From Anolis carolinensis (taxonomy: Eukaryota), in the NCBI RefSeq assembly GCF_035594765.1, contig NW_026943818.1:18360229-18424228 (forward strand): a DNA stretch of 64,000 bases, given 5' to 3'. A program made the translations under genes and the position numbers. How positions within the stretch are numbered: the stretch's first letter is position 1; each line of letters begins with the position of its first letter. Below, in pieces: positions 7,400 through 62,308 of this stretch. The notes under the pieces are model-generated. The model was not told where the DNA came from, did not search any database, and was given only the letters and a program-made list of their open reading frames with translations.

Positions 7400-8300
7400 C
7401 CATCACTTAGGCAGAAAAAATGAAATGCAAAGAGAAGGACAGGTGATGCTTGACTTGACAACAGTCCATGTGAGAATGATCTTGGAGTCTTTGTGGACAG
7501 GAAGTTGAACATGAGCCAAGATTGTGATGCAGCAGCTCAAAAAGCCAATGGGATTCCGGGCTGAATTCAAAGGAGTCTAGTGTCCAGATCGATGGAAGTC
7601 CTGGGCACCACAGTTCAAAAGAGAAATTGACTCTAAGCTGGAAGGGGTCCAGAGGAGGGTGACTAAAATAGCCAAAGATCTGGAGACCATGAATCCCTAT
7701 GAGGATCATCTTAAAGACCTGTATCCGTTTAGCCTCAGAGGAAAAGGTGGAGAGGAGACATGACTGACATGTTTAAATATTTGCAAGGATGTAGAATCAT
7801 AGAGTTGGAAGAGACCCCGTCAGCCATCTAGTCCAACCCCCTGCCACGCAAGTGAAGCACAATCGAAGCACCACCGACAGATGACCATCCAGCCATAATA
7901 ATAATATTAATTAATGTTTTTATTATTGCTGTGAGCCGCCCCGAGTCCCTTCGGGGAGATGGAGCGGGATATAAGAATAAATTTATTATTAAATTTATTA
8001 TTATTAGTAATAATAGTTGGAAGCAACTGCATGGGCCATCTAGTCCAACTCCCTGCCATAAAGGAAATGCACAATCAAAGCACCCCTGACAGATGGCCAT
8101 CCAGCCTATGTTTCAAAGCTTCCACTGGACTTTGAGGCAGAGAGTTCCACTGTTGAACAGCTCTTCTTACAGTCAGGAAGTTCTTCCTCATGTTTAAGAG
8201 GTATCTCCTCTCCTATTATTTGAACCAATGGCTCCTTTGAGTGCTAGTTTCCAGGGCACCAAAAAACAAGCCTGCACCCTCTTCTTTATAACACCCTTTC
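7400..8300. mobile_element. Cluster of CR1 fragments (plus-strand ORF2 piece followed by minus-strand 3' ends)
   Basis: LNMSQ..AA..KANGI and YE..LKDL motifs; tagaatcatagagttggaagagacc reverse tail. Confidence 0.8.
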
Positions 8301-8737: not shown

Positions 8738-9475
8738 TGAATCAAAGAGAACTAAAGGGAAGGGCCTGGGATGGCTAACGTATATTACAGAGATCCTACA
8801 CTTTCTGCAAGGAACTATGTCCCGCTATATCTCTCCGACATAACGGCTCATGCAAGGCCAACACCGGCTCTCTCAAGGCCACTAATTACCAATTATGACT
8901 AATTACAAATCCTCCAGGAAGAAGAATATTGCCTTGAGCAGCCGCAAGACTTCCCATACAAAGGCCCGCTGCAACACGTTTGGACACAAACAATAGTATC
9001 CTTTTTCCCTCTTAACAATCACAAAACAGCCCGCCTCTTTCTTCAGGGATTCCCACCAGGCTCGTCATCATCGCCACTTGTTCTCAGAAACGTCATATTT
9101 GTTTTGAGACTACTTTTGACAGCCGGCCGAAATGCTTTTCGAGCAGCCAAGCACCTTGTAGAACTGTCTCTGATTTGGAAAAATGGGAATATTTATGGAA
9201 AAGAGGTTTAAAATTTTCGATAGCTGGATCCATCAGAGAAAACATGTATAAAATGTTCTATAGACACTATAGGTGATAAGCAAAAATAGATAAATCCCAT
9301 TGAGGGGAATGCTGGAGATACAAAATACACAAAGGTACATACAATATAATTTACAATAATATATCATTATAACATATTGTATATACATTTAATATTCATA
9401 ATATTATATTGTAATACAATATAATACTAATAATACAATATAATATTAATTATATATTATATTTTACATGTAATA

Positions 9476-9782
9476 CAGTAGAGTCTCACTTATCCAAGCT
9501 AACAGGCCGCAGAAGCTTGGATAAGTGAGTATCTTGGATAATAATGAGGGATTTAGGAAAAGCCTATTAAACATCAAATTAGGTTATGATTTCACAAATT
9601 AAGCACCAAAACATCATGTTATACAACAAATTTGACAGAAAAAGTAGTTCAATACGCAGTAATGTTATGTTGTAATTGCTGTATTTACGAATTTTAGCAC
9701 CAAAATATCACAATATATTGAAAACATTGGCTACAAAAATGGCTTGGATAATCCAGAAGCTTGGATAAGTGAGACTCTACTG
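9476..9782. mobile_element. Tc1/mariner-superfamily MITE (TIR CAGTAGAGTCTCACTTATCCAA), copy 1
   Basis: TA-flanked TIRs; about 310-340-bp family with 7 copies in this window. Confidence 0.88.
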
Positions 9783-10859
9783 TATTACTAATAATATTAC
9801 AATATATTGATATAGTACAATATAGTAATTTATTGCCAGTATTGTGCTATGCTAATAATATAATACTGTATGTAAATTTAATTTGTAAGCCGCTCTGAGT
9901 CCCCTTTGGGGTGAGAAGGGCGGCATATAAATGTAGCAAATAAATAAATAATTCTTCCATGCTTGGTGGACTTATAGGCTGATGCAGACTTTTTGGGAAA
10001 AGGTAATCATGGAAACAAACAAAATCATGACTAAAAAGATTAAGAAAAACCCAGAAATGTGCCTCTTGGGTTTATTTGGTGAAAAAATAGCAAAATTATG
10101 GAGGGTGGAATAATGTAAGTTAGATGTTTGTAACTGAGGGACGGTCTCGTCAGTCTATAATATAAAAGTTTATGAAAGCTTCTGGCAACCTGAGCCTAAG
10201 AGCAAGCTCTGCCTATATCTTCAAGCCCTGCTCAATGCTTCCGGCTTCTCTTTGCACTGAAGGACACACAGAGGAGGTAAGACGATTGGCAGCTACCAGC
10301 CTAGCAAAGCAATCTTGATTCTCTGACCCACCCTTCATTGTTCTCAGCCTCTCCGCCTATAGAAAAAGAAAGCCTGCTTTATTCTGAAGGCGGCTTGAAA
10401 GCTTTCTAACAGTCAATGCCTTACAATGGGTTTGCTACAGGAACCTTTAAGGGTCACTGGGAGGAATCTTCAAATAATCAGAGTTCCTTTTCCCCAGTAA
10501 TAGTCATCCAGAAAACACTGGATGCCATCCTGGATGCCACTTATTTGCTGAAAAGTGCGGTTTCTTGTTCTGTTTCTGTGCATTTCCCTGTCCTGGGACC
10601 ACATGGATATCAACCATCATTCACCTTCCAAGTCAACTCCCAAAGCTCCTTTATTATTGCATAACAAGGAACACAGAGCTCTCTGTTGCAGTGAACGACA
10701 AGCAGTCACCCAAAATAATAATACTAATAAAGATAATACATGGTTTTCCTTTCTTAAAACAAGACTAAAACAGATTATGTCACTAGAAACAATTTTAAAT
10801 CTACAACATATAAACATGAAATCAGATTAAAGACAAACTTGTTAAAAACAAAATAAGTG

Positions 10860-11605
10860 CTTGGATGCTGCCTTCCTGCACAACAGTAGGGGGCTGGATT
10901 GGATGTCTATCTGTCAGGAGGGCTTAGATTGTGCCTGCCTTATTAATAGAATGGGGCTGCAATGGATATCCATATGTTAAGAGGGCTTGGATGGTGCCTT
11001 CCTATACACCAGAAGGCAGCTGGGTTGGATGTCTATCTGTTAAGACGGCTTGATTGGTGCCTTCCTACACAACAGGAAGGGGCTGGGTTGGATGTCCATC
11101 TGTTAAGAGGGGTTGACTGGTGCCTTCCTATACAACAGAAGGGGGTTGGGCTGGATGTCCATCTGTTAAGATGGCTTGATTGGTACCTTCCTACACAACA
11201 GAAGGGGGCTGGGTTGGATGTCCATCTGTTAAGAGGGCTTGGATGGTGCCTCCCTATACAACAAAAGGGGGCTGGCTTGGATGCCCATTTGTCAAGGGGC
11301 TTGGATAGTGCCTTCCTACACAACAGAAGGGGGCTGGGCTGGAAGTTCATCTGTTAAGAGGGCTTGGGTGGTGCCTCCCTATACAACAGAAAGGAGCAGG
11401 GTTGGATGTCCATTTGTCAAGGGGGCTTGGATGGTGCCTTCCTATACAACAGAAAGGGGCTGGGCTGGAAGTTCATCTGTTAAGAGGGCTTGGATGGTGC
11501 CTTCCTATACAACAGGAAGGGGTTGGGCCGGATGTCCCTCTGTCAAGGGGGCTTGGATGGTGCCTTCCTATACAAGAGAAAGGGGTTGGGCTGGATGGCC
11601 TTCGT
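10860..11605. repeat. 63-bp minisatellite (about 12 copies) derived from the CR1 3' end
   Basis: 21-aa periodicity in spurious ORFs; unit resembles GGATGGCCATCTGTC..TTCCTG..GGGGGTTGGACT. Confidence 0.85.
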
Positions 11606-12235: not shown

Positions 12236-12290
12236 CCTTGGTTGCATCAATGAGTAGGAGATCTATTTATTTATTATTATTACTACAGTA

Positions 12291-12613
12291 CAGTAGAGTC
12301 TCACTAATCCAAGCTAAACGGGCCGGCAGAAGCTTGGATAAGCGAATATCTTGGATTATAAGGACTGATCAAGGAAAAGCCTATTAAACATCAAATTAGG
12401 TTATGATTTTACAAATTAAGCACCAAAACTTCATGTTATACAACAAATTTGTCAGAAAAAGTAGTTCAGTACACAGTAATGCTATATAGTAATTACTGTA
12501 TTTATGAATTTAGCACCAAAATATCACGATATATTGGAAACATTGACTACAAAAATGGCTTGGATTATCCAGAGGCTTGGATAAGCGAGGCTTGGATTAG
12601 TGAGACTCTACTG
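12291..12613. mobile_element. Same MITE, copy 2
   Basis: TIRs and TA flanks. Confidence 0.88.
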
Positions 12614-25125: not shown

Positions 25126-26948
25126 GATTGGCTTCCAGGCTCTGGGTTTCAGCAATGGGAAGGGCATCCGCTTAGCCAGCCGTGGCCTTTCTGTGGCCTG
25201 TTGTGTGGCTCTGTTTCCTAGGAGCCAGCTGGCCGGCTGTCCATTTGTTGGGATCCGTAATCGGTGGGTCTCCGTCCTTTCTTCTCTGTGTGCTTTTGCA
25301 GCAGCATGTTTGTGCAAGCCAGCAGCGCCCTTCCCAGATCAAACCTTGGGTAGGTCTGCTGCTAATTGGCGTGAGAGCGTTTCAAAACGTGGCACCGCCA
25401 ATGCATTTGATCCTCCCCGGCGTCTGTGCAGCGTTTGCCTTCAGATAATTACTCGCCGTACATTAATATCGAGGCTTTGATGTATTGACAGCTTTCATCT
25501 GGGAAACCAAAGAGGCCGAAAGTGTGCACAGATTTCATAGGCGGCTACGGAGGGAAGTATCTTCCTATAGCTCCCATTTTAAAAAGTGGGAATTCGGGGG
25601 GAAAGGTGGTTGTTTTTGGATGGGAGAGCAATGCCGAAAAGCACAGATGGCCATTAAATGCTGCTAAGTAGCTGCAGGAAAATGTTCAGCATTCACAGTG
25701 GCTTTTGCAATGGGGCCAACCTTCCTTTTGACCCATCAAACCAATTTCCCAGCGGGGTTTTCAACAAATGCTTGGGAGGGTTCCTGTTTTGGGTTGGTTT
25801 TGTCAGATTATATCCCACTAGTTTGGTTCCAAGCCTCACAGATGAGAGGAAAGCGGGATATAAATATAATTTCTGAAAGACATTTTAGCGGCATCAGCAT
25901 TCACTGGATGGCGGAGGAGATTGGAATCCCAAACACTTGAGAAATAAGCGGATAAGGGAAGCCCTTCATTTGGAGCCACTTCCATTTGTATCTGGGTTTC
26001 TCTTGAACCCAACACACCTTGGGTTTTCAAAGGCTGTTTACGGTATACGCCTTTCAAGTCTTTGCAAAATATCTTCAAATCGCAGCTGGAGACCAAAAAT
26101 GCAAAACCTCGAGGGCCTGCGTGAAAGAAACTAAGCAGCATTGGATCCAAGCCATTTGGCAAAGTTCTCTCTCTTTGGGCCTTGTTAGAAAAGCGATGGC
26201 AATAAAACCCGAACCCAGCCACCTGTCGTTGCCAAAATCGGGCCGACGGCAAAGAAAAACTTGGGAGATGAGAGCCCTCCAGACATCTTTCTCAGTTTCT
26301 TAGCCACTGGTGTCTATAAATGCGCTTCTTTCAGAGGTGCCGAGTCAAAAGGCACAGATGAAGGAATGGAAAGGCAAGGAGGAGGAGAACAAGCAGCAAG
26401 CTGTCGATGGTTCCTTTCCCCTTCTGCCTCCAAAATTCCAGGCGGAGAAGCGAAATATGACTCTATCTACTCGAATCTAATGCTCATCTTTGGGGGCTAA
26501 ATGACCTCGCCAAAATGATGGTGTGCATTAGATTTGCTTCATGGGATGCAGGGATTTGTAGTTTGGTGAGGCATCAGCAAGGCCTTGTCAAACTACTGGT
26601 ACATGATTTCATAGCATTTACAGCATAGCATTCATATTCATTTCAGAGTGTAGAAACTACCCAAAGAATGATCCCTACTTTCAAATCCCATTTTTATTTT
26701 CCGGCCACTCCGCAGACGGCAGCGTTTTGCATGCAGCGCCTTCAAAATTATCATCCGAATGAGATTAAATGTGAAAACGCAGTCGAGATGTTTGCCTGGG
26801 AGGGAGGCACACAAAAGCAGGGCGGTTGTGAGAGATAGAAAGGTCTCCCCCCACCCTCCGTTCTTCTCTATTCCTCCTATCCCGTTCTCTCTGAACAAAA
26901 TGTGTAGTCTTCCAGCTGCAGAACTATTATAATTGTATATTTATATTA

Positions 26949-27271
26949 CAGTAGAGTCTCACTTATCCAACACTTGCTTATCCAACGTTCTGGATTATCC
27001 AACGCATTTTTGTAGTCAATGTTTTCAATACATCGTGATATTTTGGTGCTAAATTGGTAAATACAGTAATTACTACGTGGCATTACTGCCTATTGAACTA
27101 CTTTTTCTGCCAAATTTGTTGTATAACATGATGTTTTGGTGCTTAATTTGTAAAATCATAACCTAATTTGGTGTTTAACAGGCTTCTCCTTAATGCCTCC
27201 TTATTATCCAACATATTCACTTATCCAACATTCTGCCGGCCCGTTTATGTTGGATAAGTGAGACTCTACTG
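26949..27271. mobile_element. Same MITE, copy 5 (absent from duplication unit B)
   Basis: TIRs and TA flanks. Confidence 0.88.
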
Positions 27272-28450
27272 TACATGCAATATTACTAATAATATTGCAA
27301 TATAGTAGTATAATATATTGTATGTATATATACTTGTAAACCGCCCTGAATCCCCTTCAGGGTGAGAAGGGTGGGATATAAATGTCGCTAATAAATAATA
27401 AATAAATAATGCAAAAGGGTTGGTGACGGGCTGGATAAATGTCCTTGGTGGGCTATATCTGTCCCGCAGGCCATAGTTTGAGGATCCCTGACCTAAGAGA
27501 ACATCTCCTCCTGCCGTTTCCAGTACAAATGACATTGAACTCAGTTTGCAGCCACTGGAAGAAGACAAGCGCAAAGGCTGAGGAGACTATAGAAAATGGG
27601 ACTCTTTAGAAGTTGATAAGGCAGAGGGTTAACTGGGAACTGTCCCTTGCAAATTGAAGCAAACCAAGCTATGCTGTGGCAGACATAATATGGCAGGCGA
27701 GTTTCAGTGGCTCCTTTCCGCCCTCCATGCTGAAATGGAAAGCAATTGCCTGTCGGAGCTTCCTAATACAGCAGAAAATCAATAAACCAGTGGAGATGTC
27801 TGGAGAGGGTCATCACTTGGGTCTGTTGATATAATCGAGTTGGTTTGAAAACAGTACATTCAAAGGAAGTTAATTACTGGGAATGCCTTCTCCCTGGAGA
27901 CCCCCTTTTTCTTATTAGCTTCTTTGGCCTTCTCCCTCCTTTCTCCGTTTCTTCCATCTACAGCTTATTTTCTCTTTCGGTGCATCAATCTAGTGCAAAC
28001 CAAGATTTTGAGAAGCCAGGGAGAGGAGTATAAAATGGATTTCACAGTATATTAATAGTTGCTGAGCTCTGAGAAATTGCTTATTCCCTTTCCCTGTCCT
28101 CTCTGTATTTTTGGACTGGAGTTTGTTAAAGTTACTAAAACTACACAAAACTTCCACCTTGTGTGGCCAAAAGTTGTTTCTTATACATTTAGTGAAAGTT
28201 GCTTTTATTGGTGCCTATAATTAAAGACACCTGTTGATATATGGTGACCTCATGAAGTGTGTAAAGTATTCTTTGGCCATTGTTTTCTTCAATTATATTA
28301 TTTGTTGTGAGAATCCTTTGGTGACAGTTTGCCCTATTTCTTGGGGTTTTACTTGCCCTTTTGTCAGTCGATCAATGCAGTCAAAAAGAATCGTGGAAAG
28401 ACAGGGAAGAAAAATACATCTTAGATTATTTCATTGAATTAAAGAGCTGT

Positions 28451-28456
28451 TTTATT
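28451..28456 (-). terminator. PolyA signal AATAAA of ATPase copy A
   Basis: AATAAA about 83 nt past the stop; the homologous site in copy B (45261-45266) is the variant AGTAAA. Confidence 0.65.
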
Positions 28457-28538
28457 TCTTATAGGAATAATTTTGACACCATTCCGCCCAAAGGTAACAC
28501 ACCACTAGAACATCTTTAAAATCAGCAAAGTCGTCAGA

Positions 28539-31500
28539 TCAGTAGTAGGTCTCCCTGTCAAACCAACCACCAGGATGTCTGCGGATAATAAGCTTCCGGA
28601 TTTCGTCATAGACGAAAATCAGCAGGCTGAATGGCATGGGGTAAATCCACCACATGAGCTGGAGCGGGTACATGCGCAAGGCAACCTCCATGCCGGGGCA
28701 GTATGACAGGAAGACCGCCAGGGTGGTTTCCTGAATGATGCCGAAGATCAGGATCTTGTTATTCATGCCCTGCTGGAAGACAGAAAGCTTCCGGGTCTTG
28801 CAGGTGATCAGGTCCATCCATTGCACAACCACAATGCTGCAGAAGAAGGCGGTGTGGCAGGTGTATTCGATCACTTTCCGCTGCTCGTAAGTCCACTGCT
28901 GGCCATAGCTGTCCTCCAAGTCATTCTTGGATTGGTCGTCCCAATCCAGGCGGATCCCTAACAAGGTGGTGGGGAAGAACCCGTATTCAGCCATGATCAT
29001 GAAGTAAGTGAAGAAGCCGGCAATGGCTTGCATCATGCCGACCTGCCCGTACGACTTGCTGATGAGGCGTTCATTCACTAGCTTGTCTGTCTTGGAGTTG
29101 CGTGGTTGCCTCTTCATGATGTCACTCTCCGCCTTCTCGTAGGCCAGGGAGATGGCGGGCACCATGTCAGACCCCAGGTCAATGCACAGGATGGCAATGG
29201 TTCCCAGAGGCAATGGGATGCTCAAGATGATAAACATCAGGAAAGGGGAGATCTCTGGGATGTTGCTGGTCAAGGTGTAGGCGATGGACTTCTTGAGGTT
29301 GTCAAAGATCAGCCGGCCTTCCTCCACGCCTGTCACGATGGAGGCAAAGTTGTCATCGAGCAGGATCATGTCTGCAGCTTGTTTGGAGACATCGGAGCCA
29401 GCGATGCCCATGGCGATGCCGATGTCGGCCTTCTTGAGCGCGGGAGAGTCGTTCACTCCATCACCCGTCACGGCCACAATGGCTCCCTGCCGCTGGCACC
29501 CTTCCACAATAATGAGTTTCTGTTGCGGGGAAGTGCGGGCAAAGACAATCTCGCTGTGGTTCCTCAGGACGTCATCCAATTCTTCAGAGGTCATATCTTT
29601 GAGGTCGCTTCCATGAATCACACAGGCCTTGGCTTCTCTTGGGTTCACCTCAGAGACGGGGATGTTGAGTCGTTCAGCAATGTCCTCTACCGTCTCAGTC
29701 CCCTCAGAGATGATGCCCACTCCCTTGGCAATGGCTTTGGCGGTGATCGGATGATCCCCAGTCACCATGATCACCTTGATCCCGGCACTTCGGCATTTCC
29801 CGACGGCGTCTGGCACAGCTGCCCGAGGCGGGTCGATCATGGAGATGAGCCCAACAAAGCAGAGTTTGTTGATGGGGAAGTTGACTTTCTCCACGTCAAA
29901 TTTGAAGGCTCGGGGAAATTGCTTCTCAGGGAGGTAGCTCTGGCAGAAACCCAGCACCCTCTCGCCCAGCCCTCCCAGCTCATGATAAGCATTCTGAAAG
30001 GCCTGATGCATTGTTTTGTCCAAGTTGACTTCCTTCCCATTAATCATGATGGTGGAACATACATCAAGGATCCTCTCGGGAGCCCCTTTCATCACCAGGA
30101 TGTGGCCTTTGGGTTTATCCTCGGCTTCATGGATGGACAGCTGGTATTTGTTGGTGGAGTTGAAAGGAATCTCCACTACTTTAGGGTTCTGCTCCCGCAT
30201 GGTCGCCACAGACCCGTAGGAGAGCTCTACGCTTTTCAGGAGTGCTGACTCAGATGCGTCCCCAGTAGTTTCCCTCTTGGCAACAGGGACGTCCTCCTGC
30301 CCAGGCTTGAAGTCAGCCCGGTTGCAGAGCCCGGCGATACGGGTGAGGGCCAACCAAGTGGGTGAGCGTTTCATCATCACTGCCCCTGCTTGTTGCTCAG
30401 TGGTGTCAGCAGCAAAGATCTCATTGTCATACCACATATGAGCAACAGTCATACGGTTCTGGGTCAAGGTTCCGGTCTTGTCTGAGCAGATGGTGGAGGT
30501 GGAGCCCAGCGTCTCCACTGCCTCCAGGTTCTTCACCAGGCAATTCTTTAAGGCCATGCGCTTGGCTGTGAGGGCCAGGCAGACAGTGACAGTGGGCAAG
30601 AGCCCTTCGGGGACGTTTGCCACGATTATGCCGATCAAGAAGACAACTGCTTCCAGCCAGCGGTAACCGAGTATAATGGCCAGGATGAAGAAGGTAACTC
30701 CCAGGAAAACAGCCACAGAGGTGATGATATGGATGAAGTGTTCAATCTCTCGGGCAATGGGGGTGGATCCTTCCTCCAGGCCGGACGCTAAGGAAGCAAT
30801 GCGTCCCATCACGGTATCATCTCCCGTTAAGATCACGACGCCTCGAGCAGTTCCTTCCACACAGTTGGTTGAGAAGAAACAAATATTGCGCGTTTCCAGT
30901 GGGTTGTCATGGGTGTAATCTGCACTTCGGCTCTGCGGCTCTGATTCACCCGTGAGGGAGGAATTGTCCACCTTGCAGCCGCTGGCCGAGACAATCCGCA
31001 AATCGGCGGGGATCCGGTCTCCTCCTTTGATCTCCACCAAGTCCCCCACCACCACTTCCTCCGCATTGATCTGCGTCCTCTTGCCGTCCCGGATGACCAG
31101 GGCTTTCTGTGGTACCATGTGCTTGAAAGACTCCATGATCTGGGAGCTTTTGGCCTCCTGGTAATAGGAGAAGAAGCCTGTGATCACCACCACCGATGTC
31201 AATACAATACCCAGGTAGAGGTGGTCCATTTGCGCGTGGCTCTCCATGAGTTCCTGGATGCCATAGGCAATGAAGCAGAGGACGGCCCCGATCCACAGCA
31301 GGATGCTGAAGCCCCCAAAGAGCTGGCGACAGAATTTGACCCACTCTGGCGTGGTCGGGGGCGGCGTCAGGGCGTTGGGGCCATCCCGGGCCAAAATTTC
31401 TGCCGCTTGGGTTGTAGTAAGGCCTGTGCTCAGGTCAGTCTTATACTTCTGGGTGAGTTCTTCCAAGGAGAGCTTGTGGTCATCGATGTCCACTTCCTTC

Positions 31501-31568
31501 TTCAGATCATCCAGGTCTTCCCCCTTTTTCTTCTTGCCTTTCTTCGGAGGGGGTTTCTTCTTCCCCAT
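28539..31568 (-). CDS. Intronless Na+/K+-ATPase alpha subunit, alpha2/alpha4-like retrogene, copy A (1009 aa), nested antisense in TMEM211-like intron 2
   Basis: Single uninterrupted ORF with [35 protein letters not shown] and C-terminal ETYY; vertebrate ATP1A genes normally have over 20 exons. Confidence 0.97.
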
Positions 31569-31739
31569 AATGGCAGTGGTCCCTTTCCTCGGGACCTCTT
31601 AATGATATCTAGGGGTACAGAAGGGTGGGCGGGGCAGTCTAATGGAAGAGGAATCAGGAGGAGCAATGAAGGGGAGCAGGATGCCCCCCCAAAGGGACCT
31701 CCCACCCCCCAAAGTTGGACAAGAGTTGGGACAACAGGC

Positions 31740-32000
31740 CACGTTGCCTGTTAAGAGACCCTCCTCACTGACCACCTTGAGAAGACTGAAGACCAAGGCC
31801 CTAGCAACCAACCAAATGTTTGTCTTCTAGTATCTGAGACTCCTCCCCTTAGTAACTGAGGCCACGCCCCCAGCAACTGAAATCACAGCTCCCAGGAAAC
31901 CTAATGGGTCTTGTCTCTTAGCAACCAAGACTCAGCCCACCTCTGATGGCAACAAATGGAGGTATTGCCCTAGAACCTGAGGCCCCGCCACTTCCGTGCA
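31740..32000 (-). promoter_or_regulatory. Putative promoter of ATPase copy A: RFX X-box-like, GC-box and ETS-like motifs
   Basis: CCTAGCAAC (31800), GTCTCTTAGCAAC (31913), ATGGCAAC, GCCACGCCC, GCCCCGCC, ACTTCCG within about 430 bp of the ATG. Confidence 0.55.
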
Positions 32001-32509
32001 AATATATGATTTTTCCTTGATAATAGGGAGATTACAGTCAGTTATTAGAATAATACTATTTTTTGTACAATTTCTAGGTCCTCCAGGGCAACTCTGGGAT
32101 CAACTTCCTCCAAAAGTGCTGGAGGACCAGGTTTTTCTTATACTCAAGGCAGTTTTTGTCAGTTTTTTTATATAGCCTGGGTACCCAGTGTTGTTTGAAA
32201 AAAATGGATGTTATGAATGGACCCATGAGAAATTGATGCAGCTCCATGGCTGATAGGGTTAGCAGTAGTTTGGATGTGGGTGAAGGTACTGCAAATCCCA
32301 TCATCCGTGGTCCATTATCCCCCAAATTGCACCAGGACGTAAGGTGGATCATGGGGGGGGGGCTGTGTGCCATTTGGTTCAGATCTCTTGTTTGTGGGGG
32401 TTGCAGTGATCTGTGAAAGTGGGAACCAAACCTGCCACTCACATACTCCACCGCTCATATACATACCCACAAACATACATACAAACAAACATTGGCTTTT
32501 ATTACTATA

Positions 32510-32762
32510 TTTCAAATCCAGGGAGCAGGGTGAGCTCCCACAGCCTCAGCTTCTGCCAACCCAGCAGTTCGAAAACATGCAAATGTCATTAGATCAATAG
32601 TTACTACTCTGACAAGAAGGTAGCGGCGATCCATGCCGTCATGCCAGCCACATGACCTTGGAGGTGTCTATGGACAACGCCAGCTTAGAAATGGAGATGA
32701 GCACCAATCCACAGAGTCAGACATGACTAGACTTAATGTCAGGGGAAAACCTTTATCTTTAC
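32510..32762 (+). mobile_element. Sauria SINE
   Basis: CAGCAGTTCGAAAACATGCAAATGT..CACATGACCTTGGAGG..GGGGAAAACCTTTA tail. Confidence 0.85.
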
Positions 32763-34137
32763 GTATATAAAATATAGAAATATTACCTACAATGCATAGT
32801 ATTCACTGACAGTCTCCCATGCAAGTACTAATTTAGTTTCCAACATCAAATGGGATCTGGTGCCTTTAGGCCCTACAAGGGATTATAGAAGTTTTCATTT
32901 CATTCAACTCGACAAAAAATTCAAGCTGCTAAAGTGTAATAGAAAAGTATGCAATTAAAATACCCATGGAAGAAAAACTATCATATCTCTCAGTCTGTAA
33001 CCTTTTTTGTTTTCTCCGCCGTCTGTCTGGGGATTCAAGGGACATTAAGGCCAGTTGAATGAGTGTAGCATCAGGGTCAAGAGGAAAGATGGATGCCTCA
33101 TCTCGCAAATCTGAGCGGCTATTATCTGGTCTCTATGGATTTCCCTGTAGAGTGTGAAAAAATGCACCCCAGAACTATAGCAATTGCGATGTTTTGGATT
33201 AAAATCGGGCTGAGTTTGGCTTTCATGAGCAGGACACGTCTCCTGCTTCGCTCGGGTTTGTCCTTCTCTTATTGTGGAATTGATTCAGCAATTTTCTAAT
33301 GCCCAGAGGAAAGGACATCTCCCAATCCACCTTCATAGTTCATTCAAGCAAAATGGCAAAAATCCACTCTCTCCTAAAATTCATTCCTTCCAAGCAATTT
33401 GGGATCTATCCATGGTGCTGAAGTTAACTTTTTTAAAAAATTGCCCAACGGAATTGCTCATCTCTCATCTGTCTATCTCTTTGTCTGCCTGTCCATATCA
33501 GCTCCCTCTCTCTTCATCTCTCTCTCTGTCTGTCTGTTTCTTCATCTATCTATTTATCTACCTGTCTGCCTATTCTATCCATCTATCTCTTCATCTCTAT
33601 CATTCGGTATTCCTTCTTACCTTGCTGTCTGTCTATTAATCCCTTTTTCTTCATTTTTCTCATTCAATCCATCTATCTCCCTGCCTACCTGTCTATCTAT
33701 TTATATATCGCTCTTAACCTCTCTCTCCATCCATCGCTGTGGCTACGAAAAAGAATGGTTAAAGGCAATGGAGATTCCTAGATATTCTCCATCCAAGGCC
33801 TAGACTCCATCCCTCCTCTCTCTTCCTTTTCTTTTGGAAGGGGAAGTCCATTTCTCCTTGCATTTGTGCTTCATGGGCAGTGCTGACTTGGTAGCATTGC
33901 CTTGATGAAGCGGTAAGTCAAATCCTGGCGTCTGGTGCCACCTAGAAGCTCTTGCTCGAAATGCAGCAGTAGCTCTGCTTTGTAGCAGTGGCCCATGCCT
34001 CATCAATACCTTGCTTTGGCCACTGCAGAGCATCCAACCTGGGACATAAAGGATGCCTAGCGAGGATCTATTTTGTCAGATGGATGAAACCGTAGGTACT
34101 AGTCCCGTGGATATAGAGTTTGTCCTGCAATTACATA

Positions 34138-35034
34138 TCATCAAGTTTGCAGACGACACCAAACTGGGAGGGATAGCTAACACTCCAGAAGACAGGAGCA
34201 GAATTCAAAACGATCTTGACAGACTAGAGAGATGGGCCAAAACTAACAAAATGAAGTTCAACAGGGACAAATGCAAGATACTTCACTTCGGCAGAAAAAA
34301 TGGAAATCAAAGATACAGAATGGGGGACGCCTGGCTTGACAGCAGTGTGTGCGAAAAAGACCTTGGAGTCCTCGTGGACAACAAGTTAAACATGAGCCAA
34401 CAATGTGATGCGGCTGCTAAAAAAGCCAATGGGATTCTGGCCTGCATCAATAGGGGAATAGCGTCTAGATCCAGGGAAGTTATGCTCCCCCTCTATTCTG
34501 CCTTGGTCAGACCACACCTGGAATACTGTGTCCAATTTTGGGCACCACAGTTGAAGGGAGATGTTGACAAGCTGGAAAGCGTCCAGAGGAGGGCAACTAA
34601 AATGATTAAGGGTCTGGAGAACAAGCCCTATGAGGAGCGGCTTAAAGAGCTGGGCATGTTTAGCCTGCAGAAGAGAAGGCTGAGAGGAGACATGATAGCC
34701 ATGTACAAATATGTGAAGGGAAGTCATAGGGAGGAGGGAGCAAGCTTGTTTTCTGCTGCCCTGCAGACTAGGACACGGAACAATGGCTTCAAACTACAGG
34801 AAAGGAGATTCCACCTGAACATCAGGAAGAACTTCCTCACTGTGAGAGCTGTTCGACAGTGGAACTCTCTCCCCGGGGCCGTGGTGGAGGCTCCTTCCTT
34901 GGAGGCTTTTAAGCAGAGGCTGGATGGCCATCTGTCGGGGGTGCTTTGAATGCGATTTCCTGCTTCTTAGCAGGGGGTTGGACTAGATGGCCCATGTGGT
35001 CTTTTCCAACTCTACTATTCTATGATTCTATGAT
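34138..35034 (+). mobile_element. 5'-truncated young CR1 LINE (ORF2 C-terminus plus 3' tail)
   Basis: Open frame IKFADDTKLGG...RLDGHLSGVL*, tail ending (ATTCTATG)n; absent at the paralogous site near 49340. Confidence 0.95.
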
Positions 35035-36336
35035 CTCTCAACCAACATCTTAATCCAAGACTAAACGGTTCTGTCCGGTTTCAGCAGAAAATGGTAAGTT
35101 GTTTTATAGCCAGGTCGTAAATCATCTCAGTGAAAAGGATGTGTCAAATGGAAACAGTTGGATGCTGTACGGTTTGGGAAACAGAAGTCAGTGCAGGAAT
35201 TGTCGCCCTCGGCGCCAGGAAGATTAGAAAGCAGCAGAGAATATAAGGTGACCTTCTCTGGGAAATTGATGCCGGTGGCCTGAGCCATAAACCATCTTCC
35301 TGCTGATGCAGATTTTTCTTATCCTGGGTGGCAAAGTACTCCAGGGAAAGTCTCTTAAGGTGATTTAAAGGAAATGAACACAGGGAAACGGACGTTGGGG
35401 GGATCGAAGGCACCTCAAGAAAGGTGAACCTTATATGTCCATATTCCAGCTCTCGGATTTAGGTTTTGCCCCATGCAAAGGAATGGGATCCGTTTCTCTT
35501 GGGACAGGGCACTCCTTCTTCTTTGCTATGTTGACATTGACAGCTGTTCTTAGCGGTGTCTCTGAAAACACCACACTTGGATGGTTTATTGGATACTCTG
35601 CGTCACGGCATTGTTCCTACAGTTGTACTGGATGAGTTCATTTTTCCCCCTCATCTGATATTAATGTCGACAGCAACATGTTCACTCACCATATGTATAA
35701 GTCTATGGTTCATAATGATGGGCTGAGCTCTTGCCTTTCACCACTCTGCTCAGAGAAGGGGATGATCCCTTGTTTGAGGAAAGATTCTTGTACAATGCTC
35801 ATGTTGATAAGCCAACCTGAGTTTGTTGGAGTTGATTGTGGGACTAAAATCTCTAGACAGGAGCATTTGATGTTTGGGTGGACGTCCCTCCTGGGTCCTT
35901 AAAAAGGGACGTCTTAAGGCAAAGAAGTAATTGTCAAGAAAAGAGTTTCACTCCAGTACATCTCATCCTGTGAAAAGACCAGACGCTCACACACTTTGAG
36001 ATATGCTTTTAGTGGCTTTTTAGGGTCACATTTTGTTCCCAAATGCCTCCTCTTAGGGGACATTTGCCACATTTCTTCCAAACAGGACGTGAAGGTTGAT
36101 TGTTGATGTAGAATGAAAGGGAAAAAATGGAAAGGAAAGTGGAGGAAATGGTATCTCCCTGCTGCAGAAATAGTTTCCATTTATCCTCCATGTGTGTCAA
36201 ACCACAACTGTGCCCCAACTGGCCACTTATTTATTACCATTATACATGAAGCCCTTCACACAACACAAAGAGTCCTTTCTGGCTGTCGTCTGTGGTGTTT
36301 TGTCATTGAACTGTATTAGAAATGTTGAGAAATGTT

Positions 36337-42272: not shown

Positions 42273-43894
42273 CAGCAGGAGTTACTCACATTTGCAGAGG
42301 TAGTGCTCTGTAGGAGAGGTAGCGATCTGTAAAAAGTGCTAGTACAATAAGTACTATAAATAAGTACTGTGTACTATGTCTTTCGCATGGTCCGAGGCTT
42401 TGGGGACCCAACTACTGGTAACATGAGATTTCAAATTTTTCCCAGGTTTTTTTTTTTTTTTAAATAGGAGTGGACGGGAACTAAACTTTGATGTTCTAAA
42501 TTACAAAGAGTGCACTTTTGGCTGCTGTGTATTACATTCGGCAGAAAATATGGTCCTCCATTTCTGAAACAGATTACAGACAGAGTTCGACACATTACCG
42601 TCGGGATGGAGGTGAACGTCGTGTGATGGGACCCATTGGAAATTGTTATCAAACGGTTTCAGGAATGGCATATTTCCTAATGTGATGGAACTCCGTCATC
42701 AAAAGCATTGCCAAAATAACCAGTTGCGGTCTCTTGAGCATAATACAACGGGCTGAGCGATCCCAATGCGCAATTGAATAGTTTGCAGTGTTTTAGTAGC
42801 ACAGAAATTTGTAGTTTCATCTGTTCACTGCAAAGAGATGGAGGGATTCGAAGTCTAAAGGACTGCAAATGCCTTCCCAAATGCGGTTTCCTTCATCTGT
42901 ATGAAATGAGAAACCGTGAACACATATTCTGGATACAGGAGAGGATGAGAAGAACACCAAATCCTGGTTAGAATCAAAACCCTTTTTGGATTTAGATCCC
43001 AACCTGGCCAAAATAGGATAACGTTTGCAACCCATAAAGGGTATATTTCCCAAAAGTCTCAGGCAAAAGCAATTTGCGGCATTCTTTCCCGGTTTATAGT
43101 GTTTTCCCTCATTCGTTCACGGTGTTTTGCCCTCATGAGCAGCCCCACATTTTCATCTCATTTCATTTCATCTCATTTCATTTCATACACATCGTTCTTC
43201 ATCCCACGAAACTCTCTCCATCTTTCCCGGAGAGGCCTATTGTGTATCAATGATCGCGGCTCCCTGCTTTCAAATCCCATTTTTATTTTCCGGCCGCTCC
43301 GCAGATGGCAGCGTTTTGCATGCAGCGCCTTCAAAATTATCATCCGAATGAGATTAAATGTGAAAACGCAGTCGAGATGTTTGCCTGGGAGGGAGGCACA
43401 CAAAAGCAGGGCGGTTGTGAGAGATAGAAAGGTCTCTTCCCACCCCCACCCCCACCCCGTTCTTCTCTATTCCTCCCATTCCTTTCTCTCTGAACAAAAT
43501 GCGTAGTCTTCCAGCTGCAGAACCATCGTGACTGTGATGTCGCTTGAGGGCAAAGAAACGAATAAAGAGATGCCTTCTTGTGAAGCTGCATCATAAAGGG
43601 ATAGTCAGCCTTCCACGTTGGCTGCTGTTAGGGGCACAGGACCCCTTTGTGAAATAGCAGTTTTAAAAACCTAAGACAGGGACCGCAAACTTTTTACGCC
43701 ATGGGCTGGTTCACAGTCCCTCAGATTGTCAAGTGTGCTTTCGGCTGATGAGAGAGTCAAGCTAATTATGATGGTTCTTGCTGTTGCCTTCAAGTTGTCC
43801 CAGACTTATCAGTTTTCTTGTCAAGATTTGTTCAAAGGAGATATTCATTTATCTTCATTTGAGGCTGAGAGAGTGTGGCTTGGCTACAGGCAGC

Positions 43895-44180
43895 CTCCCT
43901 CCCTCTCCTTTTTTCTCCCTCCCTAATTCCCTTCCTTCCTTTTCCTCTTTCTCCCTCCTCCCTTCCTGTCTCATTTCCTTTCTTCTTTCCTCCCTTTTCT
44001 CTCAGCTTCCTTTTATACTTCCTTCACTTGCCCCTTTCTCCCTCCCTCATTCCCTTTCTTCTTTCCTTTTTTCCTTTCCTCTCTCCTTCTTTCCATCCTT
44101 CCTTTCTTTCTTGCCCTTGCTTCCCCCTCTCTCATTCCCTTCCTTCCTTCCTTCTTTCCTTTCTTTCTTCCTTCTTCCTC
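43895..44180. repeat. Long polypyrimidine/polypurine low-complexity tract
   Basis: Nearly pure C/T on the plus strand. Confidence 0.85.
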
Positions 44181-44443
44181 AGTGGCATCTTATGCGAAAG
44201 CAGCGTGAGGGAAATGGCAGCAGCAAAAAGGTGCCAATGCAAAAGGGTTGGTGACAGGGGCCGGATAAATGTCCTTGGTGGGCCTATATCTCTCCCAAAG
44301 GCCATAATTTGAGGATCCCTGACCTAAAACAACATCTCCTCTTGCCCTTTTCAGTACAAATGACATTGAACTCAGTTTGCAGCCACTGGAATAAGACAAG
44401 AGCAAAGGCAGGAGGAGACTATAGAAAATGGGACTCTTTAGAA

Positions 44444-45147
44444 CAGGGGTCCTCAAACTTTTGAAGCAAAGGGCCGGTCCACAATTCTTCAGACTGTTGT
44501 GGGGCCAAATTATCATTTGAAAAAAAATACAAATTCCTATGCATACTGCACATGTCTTATTTGTAGTGAAACAACAACAACAACAACAACAACAATGAAA
44601 GAACAATACAATATTTAAAAATGAAAACAATTGTAACCAACATAAACCTATCAGGATTTCAATGGGAAGTGTGGGCCTGCTTGTGGCCAATGAAATAGTC
44701 AAGTTAATTAGGATTGTTGTTGTTGTGTGACTTCAAGTCATTTCAGACTTTGGCCGAGCCTAAGTCTAAACTTAATTATTTATTTACTGCATTTATTTAC
44801 TACATTTATATCTCACCCTTCTCACCCTGAAGGGGACTCAGAGCAGCTATATGTACATACAATATATTATATTATTAGCATAGCACAATATTAGCATTAT
44901 ATAATTCTATATTGAACTATACCACTATACTATTATATGTTATGTAATATATAACATATAATTAATATTATTATATTAGTATTATATTGTATAACATAAT
45001 ATTATTATCAATATTATATGTATATACAATATATTATATTATTAGAACTGATATAAAAATATCATATTATAAAACTGAGGGCGGGGGCCAGGTAAATGAC
45101 CTTGGAGGGCCGCATTCGGCCCCCAGGCCTTAGTTTGGGGACCCCTG
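44444..45147. mobile_element. Non-autonomous hAT transposon (OposCharlie-like termini)
   Basis: TIR CAGGGGTCCTCAAACT / AGTTTGGGGACCCCTG; 8-bp TSD CTTTAGAA (44436-44443, 45148-45155); empty site in paralogue near 27605. Confidence 0.93.
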
Positions 45148-45358
45148 CTTTAGAAGTTGAAAAGAACTTGCCCTTTTACCCTTTAGTCAGTCAAAAGGAA
45201 TCGTGGAAAGACAGGGAAGAAAAATACATCTTAGATTATTTCATTGAATTAAAGAGCTGTTTTACTTCTTACAGGAACGTTTGTGAGATCATTCTGCCCA
45301 AAGGTAACACACCACTAGAAGTTCTTTAAAATCAGCAAAGTTGTCAAATGTGGACAGA

Positions 45359-48300
45359 TCAGTAGTAGGTCTCCCTCTCTACCCAACCGTCAGGATGTCT
45401 GCGGATAATGAGCTTCCGGATTTCGTCATAGACGAAAATCAGCAGGCTGAATGGCATGGGGCAAAGCCACCACGTGAGCTGGAGTGGGTACATGCGCAAG
45501 GCAACCTCCATGCCGGGGCAGTATGACAGGAAGACCGCCAGGGTGGTTTCCTCAATGAGGCCGAAGATCAGGATCTTGTTATTCATGCCCTGCTGGAAGA
45601 GAGAAAGTTTCCGGGTCTTGCAGATGATCAGGTCTGTCCACTGCACAACCACAATGCTGCAGAAGAAGGCGGTGTGGCAGGTGTATTCGATCACTTTCCG
45701 CTGCTCGTAAGTCCACTGCTGGCCATAGCTGTCCTCCAAGTCGTTCTTGGATCGGTTGTCCCAATCCAGGCGGATCCCCAACAAGGTGGTGGGGAGGAAC
45801 CCGTATTCAGCCATGATCACAAAGTAAGTGAAGAAGCCGGCAATGGCTTGCATCATGCCGATCTGCCCGTACGACATGCTGATGAGGCGTTCATTCACTA
45901 GCTTGTCTGTCTTGGAGTTGCGCGGATGCCTCTTCATGATGTCACTCTCTGCCTTCTCGTAGGCTAGAGAGATGGCGGGCACCATATCGGTCCCCAGGTC
46001 AATGCACAGGATGGTGATGGTTCCCAGAGGCAATGGGATGCTAAAAATGATAAACATCAGGAAAGGGGAGATCTCTGGGATGTTGCTGGTCAAGGTGTAG
46101 GCGATGGACTTCTTGAGGTTGTCAAAGATCAGCCGGCCTTCCTCCACGCCTGTCACGATGGAGGCAAAGTTGTCATCGAGCAGGATCATGTCTGCAGCTT
46201 GTTTGGAGACATCGGAGCCAGCGATGCCCATGGCGATGCCGATGTCGGCCTTCTTGAGCGCGGGAGAGTCGTTCACTCCATCACCCGTCACGGCCACAAT
46301 GGCTCCCTGCCGCTGGCACCCTTCCACAATAATGAGTTTCTGTTGCGGGGAAGTGCGGGCAAAGACAATCTCGCTGTGGTTCCTCAGGACGTCATCCAAT
46401 TCTTCAGAGGTCATATCTTTGAGGTCGCTTCCATGAATCACACAGGCCTTGGCTTCTCTTGGGTTCACCTCAGAGACGGGGATGTTGAGTCGTTCAGCAA
46501 TGTCCTCTACCGTCTCAGTCCCCTCAGAGATGATGCCCACTCCCTTGGCAATGGCTTTGGCGGTGATCGGATGATCCCCGGTCACCATGATCACCTTGAT
46601 CCCGGCACTTCGGCATTTCCCGACGGCGTCTGGCACAGCTGCCCGAGGCGGGTCGATCATGGAGATGAGCCCAACAAAGCAGAGTTTGTTGATGGGGAAG
46701 TTGACTTTCTCCACGTCAAATTTGAAGGCTCGGGGAAATTGCTTCTCAGGGAGGTAGCTCTGGCAGAAACCCAGCACCCTCTCGCCCAGCCCTCCCAGCT
46801 CATCATAAGCTTTCTGAAAGGCCTCTTGCATTGTTTTGTCCAAGTTGACTTCCTTCCCATTGATCATGATGGTGGAACATACATCAAGGATCCTCTCGGG
46901 AGCCCCTTTCATCACCAGGATGTGGCCTTTGGGTTTATCCTCGGCTTCATGGATGGACAGCTGGTATTTGTTGGTGGAGTTGAAAGGAATCTCTGCTACT
47001 TTAGGGTTATGTTCCCGCATGGTCGCCACAGACCCGTAGGAGAGCTCTACGCATTTCAGGAGTGCTGACTCAGATGCGTCCCCGGTAGTTTCCCTCTTGG
47101 CAACAGGGACGTCCTCCTGCCCAGGCTTGAAGTCAGCCCGGTTGCAGAGCCCGGCGATACGGGTGAGGGCCAACCAAGTGGGTGAGCGCTTCTTCATCAT
47201 CACTGCCCCTGCTTGTTCCTCAGTGGTGTCAGCGGCAAAGATCTCATTGTCGCACCACATATGAGCAACAGTCATGCGGTTCTGGGTCAAGGTTCCGGTC
47301 TTATCTGAGCAGATGGTGGAGGTGGAGCCCAGCGTCTCCACTGCCTCCAGGTTCTTCACCAGGCAATTCTTTAAGGCCATGCGCTTGGCTGTGAGAGTCA
47401 GGCAGACAGTGACGGTGGCCAAGAGTCCTTCGGGGACGTTTGCCACGATTATGCCGATCAAGAAGATAACCGCCTCCAGCCAGTGGTAACCGAGTACAAT
47501 GGCCAGGATGAAGAACGTCACTCCCAGGAAAACAGCCACAGAGGTGATGATATGGATGAAGTGTTCAATCTCTCGGGCAATGGGGGTGGTTCCTTGCCCT
47601 AGGCCAGATGCTAAAGAAGCAATGCGTCCCATCACAGTATCATCTCCCGTTAAGATGACGACGCCTTGAGCAGTTCCTTCCACACAGTTGGTTGAGAAGA
47701 AGCAAATATTGCGTGTTTCGAGCGGGTTCTCGTTGGTGTAATCTGCGCTTCGGCTCTGCGGCTCTGATTCACCCGTGAGGGAGGAGTTGTCCACCTTGCA
47801 GCCGCTGGCTGAGACAATCCGCAAATCGGCGGGGATCCGGTCTCCTCCTTTGATCTCCACCAAGTCCCCCACCACCACTTCCTCCGCATTGATCTGCGTC
47901 CTCTTGCCGTCCCGGATGACCAGGGCTTTCTGTGGTACCATGTGCTTGAAAGACTCCATGATCTGGGAGCTTTTGGCCTCCTGGTAATAGGAGAAGCAGC
48001 CTGTGATCAGCACCACCGATGACAATACAATACCCAGGTAGAGGTTGTCCTTTTGCGCGTTGCTCTCCACTAGCTCCTGGATGGCATAGGCAAAGAAGCA
48101 GAGGATGGCCCCGATCCACAGCAGGATGCTGAAGCCCCCAAAGAGCTGGCGACAGAATTTGACCCACTCTGGCGTGGTCGGGGGCGGGGTCAGGGCGTTG
48201 GGGCCATCCCGGGCCAAAATTTCTGCCGCTTGGGTTGTAGTAAGGCCTGTGCTCAGGTCAGTCTTATACTTCTGGGCGAGTTCTTCCAAGGAGAGCTTGT

Positions 48301-48391
48301 GGTCATCGATGTCCACTTCCTTCTTCAGATCCTCCAGTTCTTCCCCCTTTTTCTTCTTGCCTTTCTTCAGAGGAGGTTTCTTCTTCCCCAT
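45359..48391 (-). CDS. Intronless Na+/K+-ATPase alpha subunit, alpha2/alpha4-like retrogene, copy B (1010 aa)
   Basis: Same P2C ATPase motifs; intact ORF ending [12 protein letters not shown]. Confidence 0.97.
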
Positions 48392-48504
48392 AATGGCAGT
48401 GGGGTACCTTTCCTCGGGACCTCTTAATGGTATCTAGGGGTACAGAAGGGTGGGCTGGATAGACCTCCCACACTCCAAAGTTGGACAAGAGTTGGGACAA
48501 CAGG

Positions 48505-48657
48505 CCAAGTTGCCTGTTAAGAGACCCTCCTCACTGACCACCTTGAGGAGACTGAAGACCAAGGCCCTAGCAACCAACCAACCAACCATCTTTGTCTTCT
48601 AGTATGAGACTCCTCCCCTTAGCAACCGAGGCCACGCCCACAGCACCCAGGAAACCT
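48505..48657 (-). promoter_or_regulatory. Putative promoter of ATPase copy B (shorter version of copy A promoter)
   Basis: CCTAGCAAC (48566), CTTAGCAAC (48618), GCCACGCCC; homologous to about 31740-31902. Confidence 0.5.
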
Positions 48658-49878
48658 CTCATCTGTCTATCTCTTTGTCTGTCTGTTTGTCTGTCCATAT
48701 CTGCTCCCTCTCTCTTCATCTCTCTGTCTGTCTGTTTCTTCATCTATCTATTTATCTACCTGTCTACCTATTTCATCCATCTATCACTTCATCTCTCTCT
48801 CTCATTCGGTATTCCTTCTTACCTTGCTGTCTGTCTATTAATCCCTTTCTCTTCATCTTTCTCATTCAATCCATCTATCTCCCTGCCTACCTTTCTGCCT
48901 ATCTATTTATATATCGCTCTTAACCTCTCCATCCATTGCTGTGGCTACGAAAAAGCATGGTTAGAGGAAATGGAGATTCCTAGATATTCTCCATCCAAGG
49001 CCTAGACTCCATCCCTCCTCTCTCTTCCTTTTCTTTTGGAAGGGGAAGTCCATTTCTCCTTGCATTTGTGCTTCATGGGCAGTGCTGACTTGGTAGCATT
49101 GCCTTGATGAAGCGGTAAGTCAAATCCTGGCGTCTGGTGCCACCTAGAAGCTCTTGCTCGAAATGCAGCAGTAGCTCTGCTTTGTAGCAGTGGCCCATGC
49201 CTCATCAATACCTTGCTTTGGCCACTGCAGAGCATCCAACCTGGGACATAAAGGATGCCTAGCGAGGATCTATTTTGTCAGATGGATGAAACCGTAGGTA
49301 CTAGTTCCGTGGATATAGAGTTTGTCCTGCAATTACATATCTCTCCTGGTTAATCCTCAACCAACACCTTAATCCGGGACTAAACTGTTCTGTCCAGTTT
49401 TAACAGAGAATGGTAAGTTGTTTCATAGCCAGGTTGTAAATAATCTCAGTGAAAAGGATGTGTCAAATGGAAACAGTTGGATGGCTTATGATTTCGGAAA
49501 CAGAAGTCAGTGTGGGAATTGTCGCCCTTGGCATCAGGAAGATTAGAAAGCAGCAGAGAATATAAGGTGGTCTTCTCTAGGAAACTGATGCCGGTGGCCT
49601 CAGCCATAAACCATCTTCCCGCTGACGCAGATTTTTCTTATCCTGGGTGGCAAAGTACTCCAGGGAAAGTCTCTTAATGTGATTTAAAGGAAATGAATGC
49701 AGGGAAACTGACATTGGGGGGATCGAAGGCACCTCAAGAAAGGTGAACCTTATCTGTCCATTTTCCAGCTCTCAGAGAAGTGCCTGGATAAGATCCACAT
49801 AGACTCAGGATTTAATAAAGTGTCCTCTGGAGATCAGATGGAAACCGTAACAGAAACAAGTAGTTTATTTTTAAGGTA

Positions 49879-61918: not shown

Positions 61919-62308
61919 CTGGGAAAGAAAGGAATACAAGGAAGGGGTCAGCATGGGAAAGCAGGGGCCTCACCCCATGCAGCAGCAACCCTTTCTTCCT
62001 CCTCTGTTGCTGTTCTGCACCAGGGATCTTTTTGCCTTATCATCATCAACAACAAGAGCCCTGGGAGCCCTGAATAAATGCCACCCTTTTGTAGCTTATG
62101 ATTAAATATTATTTACATATTGATTATTGTTGTTGCTGTTATTTGGTTTTCTCCACGTACTCCAAAACACTTTAGCCCTGAACAAACGCCACCCTTTTGT
62201 GGCTTATGATTACATATTATTAAGGCATATTATTATTATTATTATTATTTTGGTGACTGATTTCCTTAATTTGGGATTGCCCTCTTTCTCCATTCTATTT
62301 TCATAGTA

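Follow-up and report, generated by a model that had tools for sequence, protein, structure and literature searches.

An intronless Na,K-ATPase alpha gene pair in Anolis carolinensis in which the faster-evolving copy carries histidine at the steroid-binding position 122

We analysed a stretch of 64,000 nucleotides of Anolis carolinensis DNA (assembly GCF_035594765.1, contig NW_026943818.1, positions 18,360,229 to 18,424,228 of the forward strand), referred to below as the window, that contains two intronless genes encoding alpha subunits of the Na,K-ATPase. The genes, here called copy A and copy B, differ at residue 122 (sheep alpha1 numbering) of the extracellular loop between the membrane segments M1 and M2, a loop that takes part in the binding of cardiotonic steroids such as ouabain. 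The features of the pair, given with their coordinates in the window, their strand and the source of the assignment, where ORF stands for open reading frame, are the following:

28539..31568, minus strand: copy A, an intronless Na,K-ATPase alpha ORF of 1009 codons (ORF list and translation).
45359..48391, minus strand: copy B, an intronless Na,K-ATPase alpha ORF of 1010 codons, the slower copy, with N122 and K120 (ORF list and translation).
31221..31223, minus strand: CAC codon for His at sheep alpha1 position 122, copy A residue 116 (translation, alignment and UniProt record L7N020).
31221..31256, minus strand: extracellular M1-M2 loop of copy A, from Q111 to H122 (translation and alignment).
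48044..48079, minus strand: M1-M2 loop of copy B, with the AAC codon for N122 (codon 116) at 48044-48046 (translation).
31173..31283, minus strand: island of divergence between the copies, codons 96-132, from the end of M1 through the loop and M2 (codon comparison of A and B).
30990..31172, minus strand: codons 133-193, a probable gene-conversion tract that adjoins the island on its 3' side; A and B show 0 differences over these 183 nt, whereas their mean divergence is 3.6% (codon comparison).
29229..29981, minus strand: codons 530-780, part of the N domain plus the P domain, a long homogenised tract with 1 synonymous difference between A and B (codon comparison).
26672..35457, no strand: duplication unit around copy A, with flank blocks that are interrupted by insertions and 91-94% identical to the unit around copy B (self-BLAST).
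43261..49776, no strand: duplication unit around copy B (self-BLAST).

Both copies are, as judged from their sequence, full Na,K-ATPase alpha subunits (P2C P-type ATPases), with the precomputed Pfam architecture Cation_ATPase_N, E1-E2_ATPase, Hydrolase and Cation_ATPase_C. The DKTGT phosphorylation motif (Asp369, seen also by alignment) and the TGES motif were found in both translations, and the cation-site residues E327, S775, N776, E779, D804, D808, Q923 and D926 as well as the C-terminal YY are present in A and B. In a comparison with solved structures copy A scored about 1840 bits against alpha1 and alpha3, about 1450 bits against the H,K-ATPases and about 360 bits against SERCA. The two copies are 95% identical at the protein level and 96.4% identical at the DNA level, the sole insertion or deletion between them is one codon that leaves the frame intact, and copy A contains no stop codon and no frameshift across its 3027 nt. 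Protein records exist for both: UniProt L7N020 is an older A. carolinensis record of copy A that differs from the window copy at 7 residues, and XP_008117666 / H9GUW4 (A. carolinensis) is near-identical to copy B, with 4 residues that differ.

Residues were numbered on the basis of a HMMER alignment to human alpha1 (7e1z) and are given as sheep/pig mature positions; Q105 of copy A then corresponds to precursor Q118 of 7e1z and to sheep Q111, and H116 of copy A to precursor N129 and to sheep N122. An earlier note on this DNA, made from the letters alone, had reported that copy A carries His and copy B Asn at position 122, and the codons are indeed CAC in copy A and AAC in copy B. The alignment also bore out what the note had said of the surrounding residues: C104, Y108, Q111, F786, T797 and R880 are kept in both copies, P118A is common to both and K120 is found in B (copy A has M120 instead). 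N122H requires a single A-to-C transversion (AAC to CAC), and the very same change has occurred five codons upstream, where copy A has His117. The codon is not an assembly error, because L7N020, an independent earlier record, has an identical loop including H122. Among the approximately 140 alpha subunits compared, His at position 122 was found in copy A alone, and the difference goes beyond chance variation: Asn122 is present without exception in 107 further vertebrate alpha subunits, 9 orthologues from the same gene family (described below) and an additional set of about 15 orthologues from squamates.

In the Drosophila enzyme N122H raised the half-maximal inhibitory concentration of ouabain about 254-fold, and more when changes at position 111 were added (PMC13704064). 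By analogy with such mutagenesis in other backgrounds, copy A, if it is a working pump, would probably show a lower sensitivity to ouabain-type steroids than copy B does. A survey of tetrapods described N122H as common in snake ATP1A1 (bioRxiv 10.1101/2021.11.29.470343); the journal version of this survey is marked as retracted and we therefore use it as a lead only.

The proteins nearest to the pair are squamate entries named 'alpha-2-like'. We found members of this family in iguanians (A. sagrei, Pogona and Phrynocephalus), in the lacertids Podarcis and Zootoca and the teiid Salvator, in anguimorphs (Varanus and Elgaria) and in snakes (pythons, boas, vipers, elapids and colubrids), and the gene is intronless in Podarcis (3015 nt for 1004 aa) and in Crotalus (3030 nt for 1009 aa) too. 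In a phylogeny made with IQ-TREE the intronless genes formed a long-branched, squamate-only clade with 100% support that adjoins sauropsid alpha2, in a tree where the neighbouring nodes had 43-95% support and the backbone connecting alpha1, alpha2 and alpha3 was poorly resolved. The pair belongs to an old extra paralogue, most likely a processed retrogene of alpha2, that is common to Iguania, Lacertoidea, Anguimorpha and snakes. In a gene so widely shared, any poly(A) remnant or target-site duplications would be expected to have been lost to erosion. The ratio of non-synonymous to synonymous substitution rates (omega) in the family is 0.06-0.13, and the family evolves several-fold faster than alpha2, yet under clear purifying selection. 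We rejected the idea that the retrogene serves as a substitute for a lost ATP1A2, because canonical ATP1A2 is still present in A. carolinensis (XP_062820811, with the ordinary sensitive loop QAAMEDEPSNDN) and has equivalents in A. sagrei, Varanus and snakes.

The steroid-binding loop of the retrogene family has K or R at position 120 and mostly A at position 118. K120 is found in nearly all members, and the M120 of copy A is shared with Zootoca vivipara. Sites relevant to resistance vary in several lizards; the retrogene of Phrynocephalus forsythii, for instance, has E at position 111 (loop EVVMEEKPDRDN). The tetrapod survey reported that variation at the steroid site of ATP1A2 is mostly restricted to squamates (bioRxiv 10.1101/2021.11.29.470343). 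NCBI labels the retrogene family 'alpha-2' or 'alpha-2-like', and part of the surveyed ATP1A2 variation might therefore stem from it; surveys that consider three alpha paralogues do not separate this squamate alpha2-like family with its divergent steroid-binding loop. Our literature search found no paper on the squamate retrogene family or on the anole pair.

Some further observations concern the orthologues. In Crotalus horridus we found two adjacent copies of 1009 aa (Chor_005816 and Chor_005817) with one difference (E/Q at 833); either the retrogene was recently and independently duplicated in tandem in this lineage as well, or the duplication is one of the assembly. The orthologue of Podarcis raffonei (CM049764.1) is nested in a gene on the opposite strand with a product that contains an L_HMGIC_fpl domain; no exons matching this host gene were found in the anole window, and a comparison of the Podarcis and Crotalus flanks with the window gave only matches to the reverse transcriptase of a long interspersed nuclear element (LINE). 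A viper orthologue is present on a Logan contig of 3441 nt, which is no proof of an mRNA because the contig is colinear with the Crotalus genome.

Copies A and B go back to a recent tandem duplication in the anole lineage. The unit that was copied measures about 7-9 kb, the synonymous divergence (dS) between the copies is 0.079 and the non-synonymous divergence (dN) 0.024, and the tree groups A with B to the exclusion of A. sagrei. Divergence is patchy along the gene: dS reaches 0.14-0.23 in codons 200-330, and the tracts of codons 133-193 and 530-780 are identical or virtually so, a pattern that points to gene conversion between the copies. Mosaicism was also observed in the older record L7N020, which has the copy B residue at 5 of its 7 differing sites (copy A residues 18, 20, 39, 460 and 792), including T799 and not A799; this suggests either that gene-conversion tracts are segregating or that the older assembly is chimeric. 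Upstream, the proximal 300 bp or so of the two copies are 91-93% identical. Beyond that, about 310 bp before its ATG, copy A has some 1.6 kb of extra sequence (31876-33461) that is absent from the matching position at copy B and that could alter the regulation of copy A.

The two copies have not diverged at the same pace. With A. sagrei to polarise the changes, 34 derived replacements were assigned to A and 16 to B, with 6 unresolved (binomial p=0.015). For synonymous changes, with polarity taken from Podarcis and two vipers, the counts were 20 in A and 18 in B. Omega is accordingly about 0.4 for copy A and about 0.2 for copy B, against about 0.1 for the family. The value for copy A lies below the neutral expectation (p=0.0004-0.003), and judging from these substitutions copy A is a constrained coding gene and not a dead one. 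The replacements in A also differ in kind: 12 of the 34 hit residues that are otherwise invariant (N122H, C138F, A331P, T338A, C452S, T799A, T807S, I850V, V864M, I929T, L951I and C983Y), compared with 1 of the 16 in B (Fisher p=0.04). The C-terminal membrane half has gathered 17 replacements on the A side, compared with a total of 14 synonymous differences, an elevated load which indicates that the acceleration extends beyond the steroid pocket. GC-biased gene conversion was considered as the driver of these replacements and ruled out, because copy A shows no bias from AT to GC (10 AT-to-GC versus 15 GC-to-AT).

We give a probability of about one half to the reading that copy A is the faster member of a young anole duplicate, marked by asymmetric divergence while purifying selection was weakened but still in force, N122H being one of many changes in the membrane domain. 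The source of the duplication would have been the old, squamate-wide, alpha2-like processed retrogene. After duplication, constraint would have been relaxed unevenly, with copy B staying near the ancestral protein and copy A gaining some 34-40 replacements, chiefly in the membrane domain. N122H would then be an ordinary point mutation, one of the 12 at vertebrate-invariant positions, in a copy that purifying selection retained as a coding gene. His122 would reduce the affinity of copy A for ouabain-type steroids relative to copy B, provided that copy A is a working pump, and the difference in affinity is most simply seen as a biochemical by-product of asymmetric divergence, not shown to be a target of selection.

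The surroundings of residue 122 deserve separate attention. Within the island of codons 96-132 the copies differ by 10 non-synonymous and 2 synonymous changes, and in the rest of the gene by 45 and 43 (Fisher p=0.06, marginal); the clustering of replacements in the M1-M2 hairpin is suggestive and not significant. Seven of the island replacements are A-derived, one is B-derived and two could not be polarised, which puts the A-derived number at 7-9. The island is bracketed by difference-free tracts of 81 nt and 183 nt, and it is the same in both copy A records. Import of the loop by ectopic conversion from another alpha paralogue was also considered and ruled out: the island contains just 2 synonymous differences, too few for a loop copied from a divergent paralogue, and H122 was seen in none of the relatives.

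A number of points weigh against treating N122H as a mere companion of asymmetric divergence. An island that persists between homogenised tracts is the pattern that would be expected if selection opposes gene conversion, by analogy with what has been reported for ATP1A1 of the frog Leptodactylus, and a local omega above 1 is not predicted by plain relaxation. Anoles do encounter steroid-defended prey, and are reported to eat fireflies (PMC9449480). The consequence of the substitution for affinity is at issue too, as the effect of N122H depends on the background: engineered changes at position 122 reportedly left lizard pumps nearly inactive, N122H in lizard alpha1 among them (bioRxiv 10.1101/2021.11.29.470343, the survey with the retracted journal version). 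In copy A the expected change in affinity may fail to appear, or the other changes of this copy may be required to compensate.

Toxin-driven neofunctionalisation, which we regard as possible though on balance doubtful, would make copy A a steroid-insensitive spare pump next to a sensitive copy B, with the M1-M2 regions kept apart against gene conversion under exposure to dietary toxins of the bufadienolide or cardenolide type, such as those of fireflies. No other family member has H122, which occupies the resistance site with the best validation, the island has remained unchanged between the two copy A records despite 5 other paralogue-diagnostic differences, copy A is under purifying selection and, as described below, words specific to copy A occur in small sequencing runs, which makes its transcription probable; together with the reported firefly diet these observations all fit this explanation. 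They have to be set against the marginal excess in the island, against 11 further invariant residues that were changed in A far from the steroid pocket (e.g. A331P, C452S, I929T and C983Y) and against the loss of K120 in copy A with Q111 unaltered. Moreover, canonical alpha2 of the same lizard has a sensitive loop, and one resistant isoform would thus protect the animal only if it is expressed in an exposed tissue. The earlier note had proposed that the pair may be a resistant/sensitive set tuned to dietary toxins. At the level of sequence the prerequisites are there, with an intact copy A that has H122, a copy B that has N122 and catalytic and cation sites intact in both; selection on toxin sensitivity was not shown, given that copy A is fast overall (34 versus 16), that the island stays at p=0.06 and that the canonical alpha2 loop is sensitive. 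A resistant/sensitive pair is a plausible reading, for which the anole genes are a good and directly testable candidate, not a demonstrated case.

Another explanation, which we consider unlikely, is that copy A is decaying toward a pseudogene and that N122H is one of many damaging changes without physiological meaning. Several of the changes at invariant sites are indeed radical: A331P lies four residues past the cation-site Glu327 in M4, T807S lies beside Asp804 and Asp808, and C138F and C983Y are radical as well. Omega is about twice as high in copy A as in B and exceeds the family background by a factor of 3-4, the 1.6-kb insertion upstream of the ATG of copy A has no counterpart at copy B, and no run recorded as RNA was present among the sequencing runs that contain the gene. 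On the other hand, the omega of about 0.4 falls significantly short of 1, no stop or frameshift has appeared in 3027 nt at a synonymous divergence of about 4% on the A branch (with one in-frame codon as the sole indel), and all catalytic and ion-binding residues of A are intact.

The sequencing runs themselves also argue against decay. At least half of the words sampled for the search were found in 19 runs from 7 studies, 0 of them on record as RNA. Some of these runs are small (35-82 million letters), are probably RNA and contain 0.56-0.94 of the words, whereas genome-like runs comprise about 1300-1600 million letters and a run with copy B only could contain at most 0.47 of the words. Other small runs of the same organism contained 0.02-0.04 of the words. 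The word content of the small runs fits tissue-restricted transcription of copy A, and is not proof of it.

It is quite improbable, in our estimation, that selection acted on another property of the pump (dependence on K+ or pH, the beta or FXYD partner, or the membrane environment) and that His117, His122 and the membrane-domain changes serve that property. About two-thirds of the A-derived changes fall in transmembrane segments or extracellular loops by our own assignment of the helix spans, including the M7-M8 loop (872 and 886) and M10 (982 and 983), and the two identical AAC-to-CAC changes have placed His117 and His122 five residues apart. However, the apparent bias toward the membrane is inflated because the long cytoplasmic tracts have been homogenised by conversion. 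Finally, that CAC reflects an assembly or consensus error or an A/B chimera is hardly credible, even though the copies have 96.4% identity and the records differ in a mosaic reminiscent of conversion, as the loop is identical in the independent earlier protein record, 19 runs from 7 studies contain at least half of the sampled words, and a chimera is unable to create H122 because His occurs neither in copy B nor in any relative.

Resistance to cardiotonic steroids is a textbook example of predictable molecular evolution, and insects as well as a single genus of frogs are known to possess duplicated pumps of which one is resistant. As in the tandem S and R paralogues of ATP1A1 in Leptodactylus, the anole locus consists of a tandem alpha duplicate in which a major resistance site was changed in one copy and is ancestral in the other, gene conversion has been recurrent, and differences between the paralogues persist in patches that include the M1-M2 hairpin. 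The frog R copy carries Q111R and N122D, and both the resistance and the compensating role played by the other 10 differences have been measured (PMC13704064), whereas anole copy A is, of these two sites, changed at 122 alone and is known from sequence only. The frog gene is furthermore the intron-bearing housekeeping alpha1, whereas the anole gene is an extra, intronless retrogene with a derived copy that is generally accelerated.

With ATPalpha1 of the monarch and other cardenolide-adapted insects copy A shares the very same N122H, and several insect lineages possess resistant and sensitive duplicates. In insects, however, N122H usually comes together with V, L or T at position 111 and the link to host-plant toxins is established, while copy A keeps Q111 and a link to diet was not shown. 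Within the same order, changes in the same loop are found in canonical paralogues: H122, the residue of copy A, occurs in ATP1A1 of snakes, and ATP1A3 of varanids and of toad-eating snakes combines L111 with R120. These concern essential, intron-bearing alpha1 and alpha3 genes, unlike the anole change, which lies in a lineage-specific retrogene duplicate.

The squamate family also resembles mammalian ATP1A4, the sperm isoform found only in mammals, in being an extra, faster-evolving, alpha2-related paralogue confined to one amniote group. ATP1A4, however, is a DNA duplicate with introns that lies beside ATP1A2; the squamate family lacks introns and is of independent origin. We found no special similarity of copy A to mammalian alpha4: the solved alpha4 (8zyj) scored 1730 bits, below the approximately 1840 bits of alpha1 and alpha3, and the family forms a clade of squamate sequences only. 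The suggestion in the earlier note that the pair might be tuned to endogenous ouabain signalling in sperm thus remains unsupported.

On a tentative and rather unlikely extension of these results, anoles of the carolinensis lineage keep a steroid-insensitive spare pump derived from a duplicated retrogene, with selection maintaining the M1-M2 hairpin against gene conversion, possibly in connection with lucibufagin-bearing fireflies. If true, target-site insensitivity would for the first time be seen on a retrogene in a vertebrate, and the anoles would offer a lizard parallel to the S/R pair of Leptodactylus. The case would provide an independent resistant/sensitive pair among vertebrates, in a lizard that is tractable in the laboratory and on an intronless retrogene under gene conversion. 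It would also imply that surveys limited to ATP1A1, ATP1A2 and ATP1A3 miss a squamate paralogue family in which the loop was already different (K/R120 and A118). On the conservative reading, the anole pair is a natural experiment on how many changes at invariant residues are tolerated by an alpha subunit that is still constrained.

The remainder of the window contains repeats. In the upstream flank of copy A we found the C-terminal part of a LINE reverse transcriptase (an ORF of 298 aa at 34053-34949, plus strand), with related LINE fragments at about 7400-8300 and 63400-64000 and a 78%-identical element in the Podarcis raffonei locus. An interspersed repeat of about 330 bp, probably a short interspersed nuclear element (SINE), is present in six copies that are 86-93% identical and occur in both orientations:

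9447-9773, 12264-12620, 16761-17096, 22827-23159, 26947-27292 and 62287-62631: copies of the repeat of about 330 bp.

Four satellite-like blocks of tandem repeats with 78-90% self-identity are located at 6095-7011, 10856-11597, 14273-15174 and 20489-21299.

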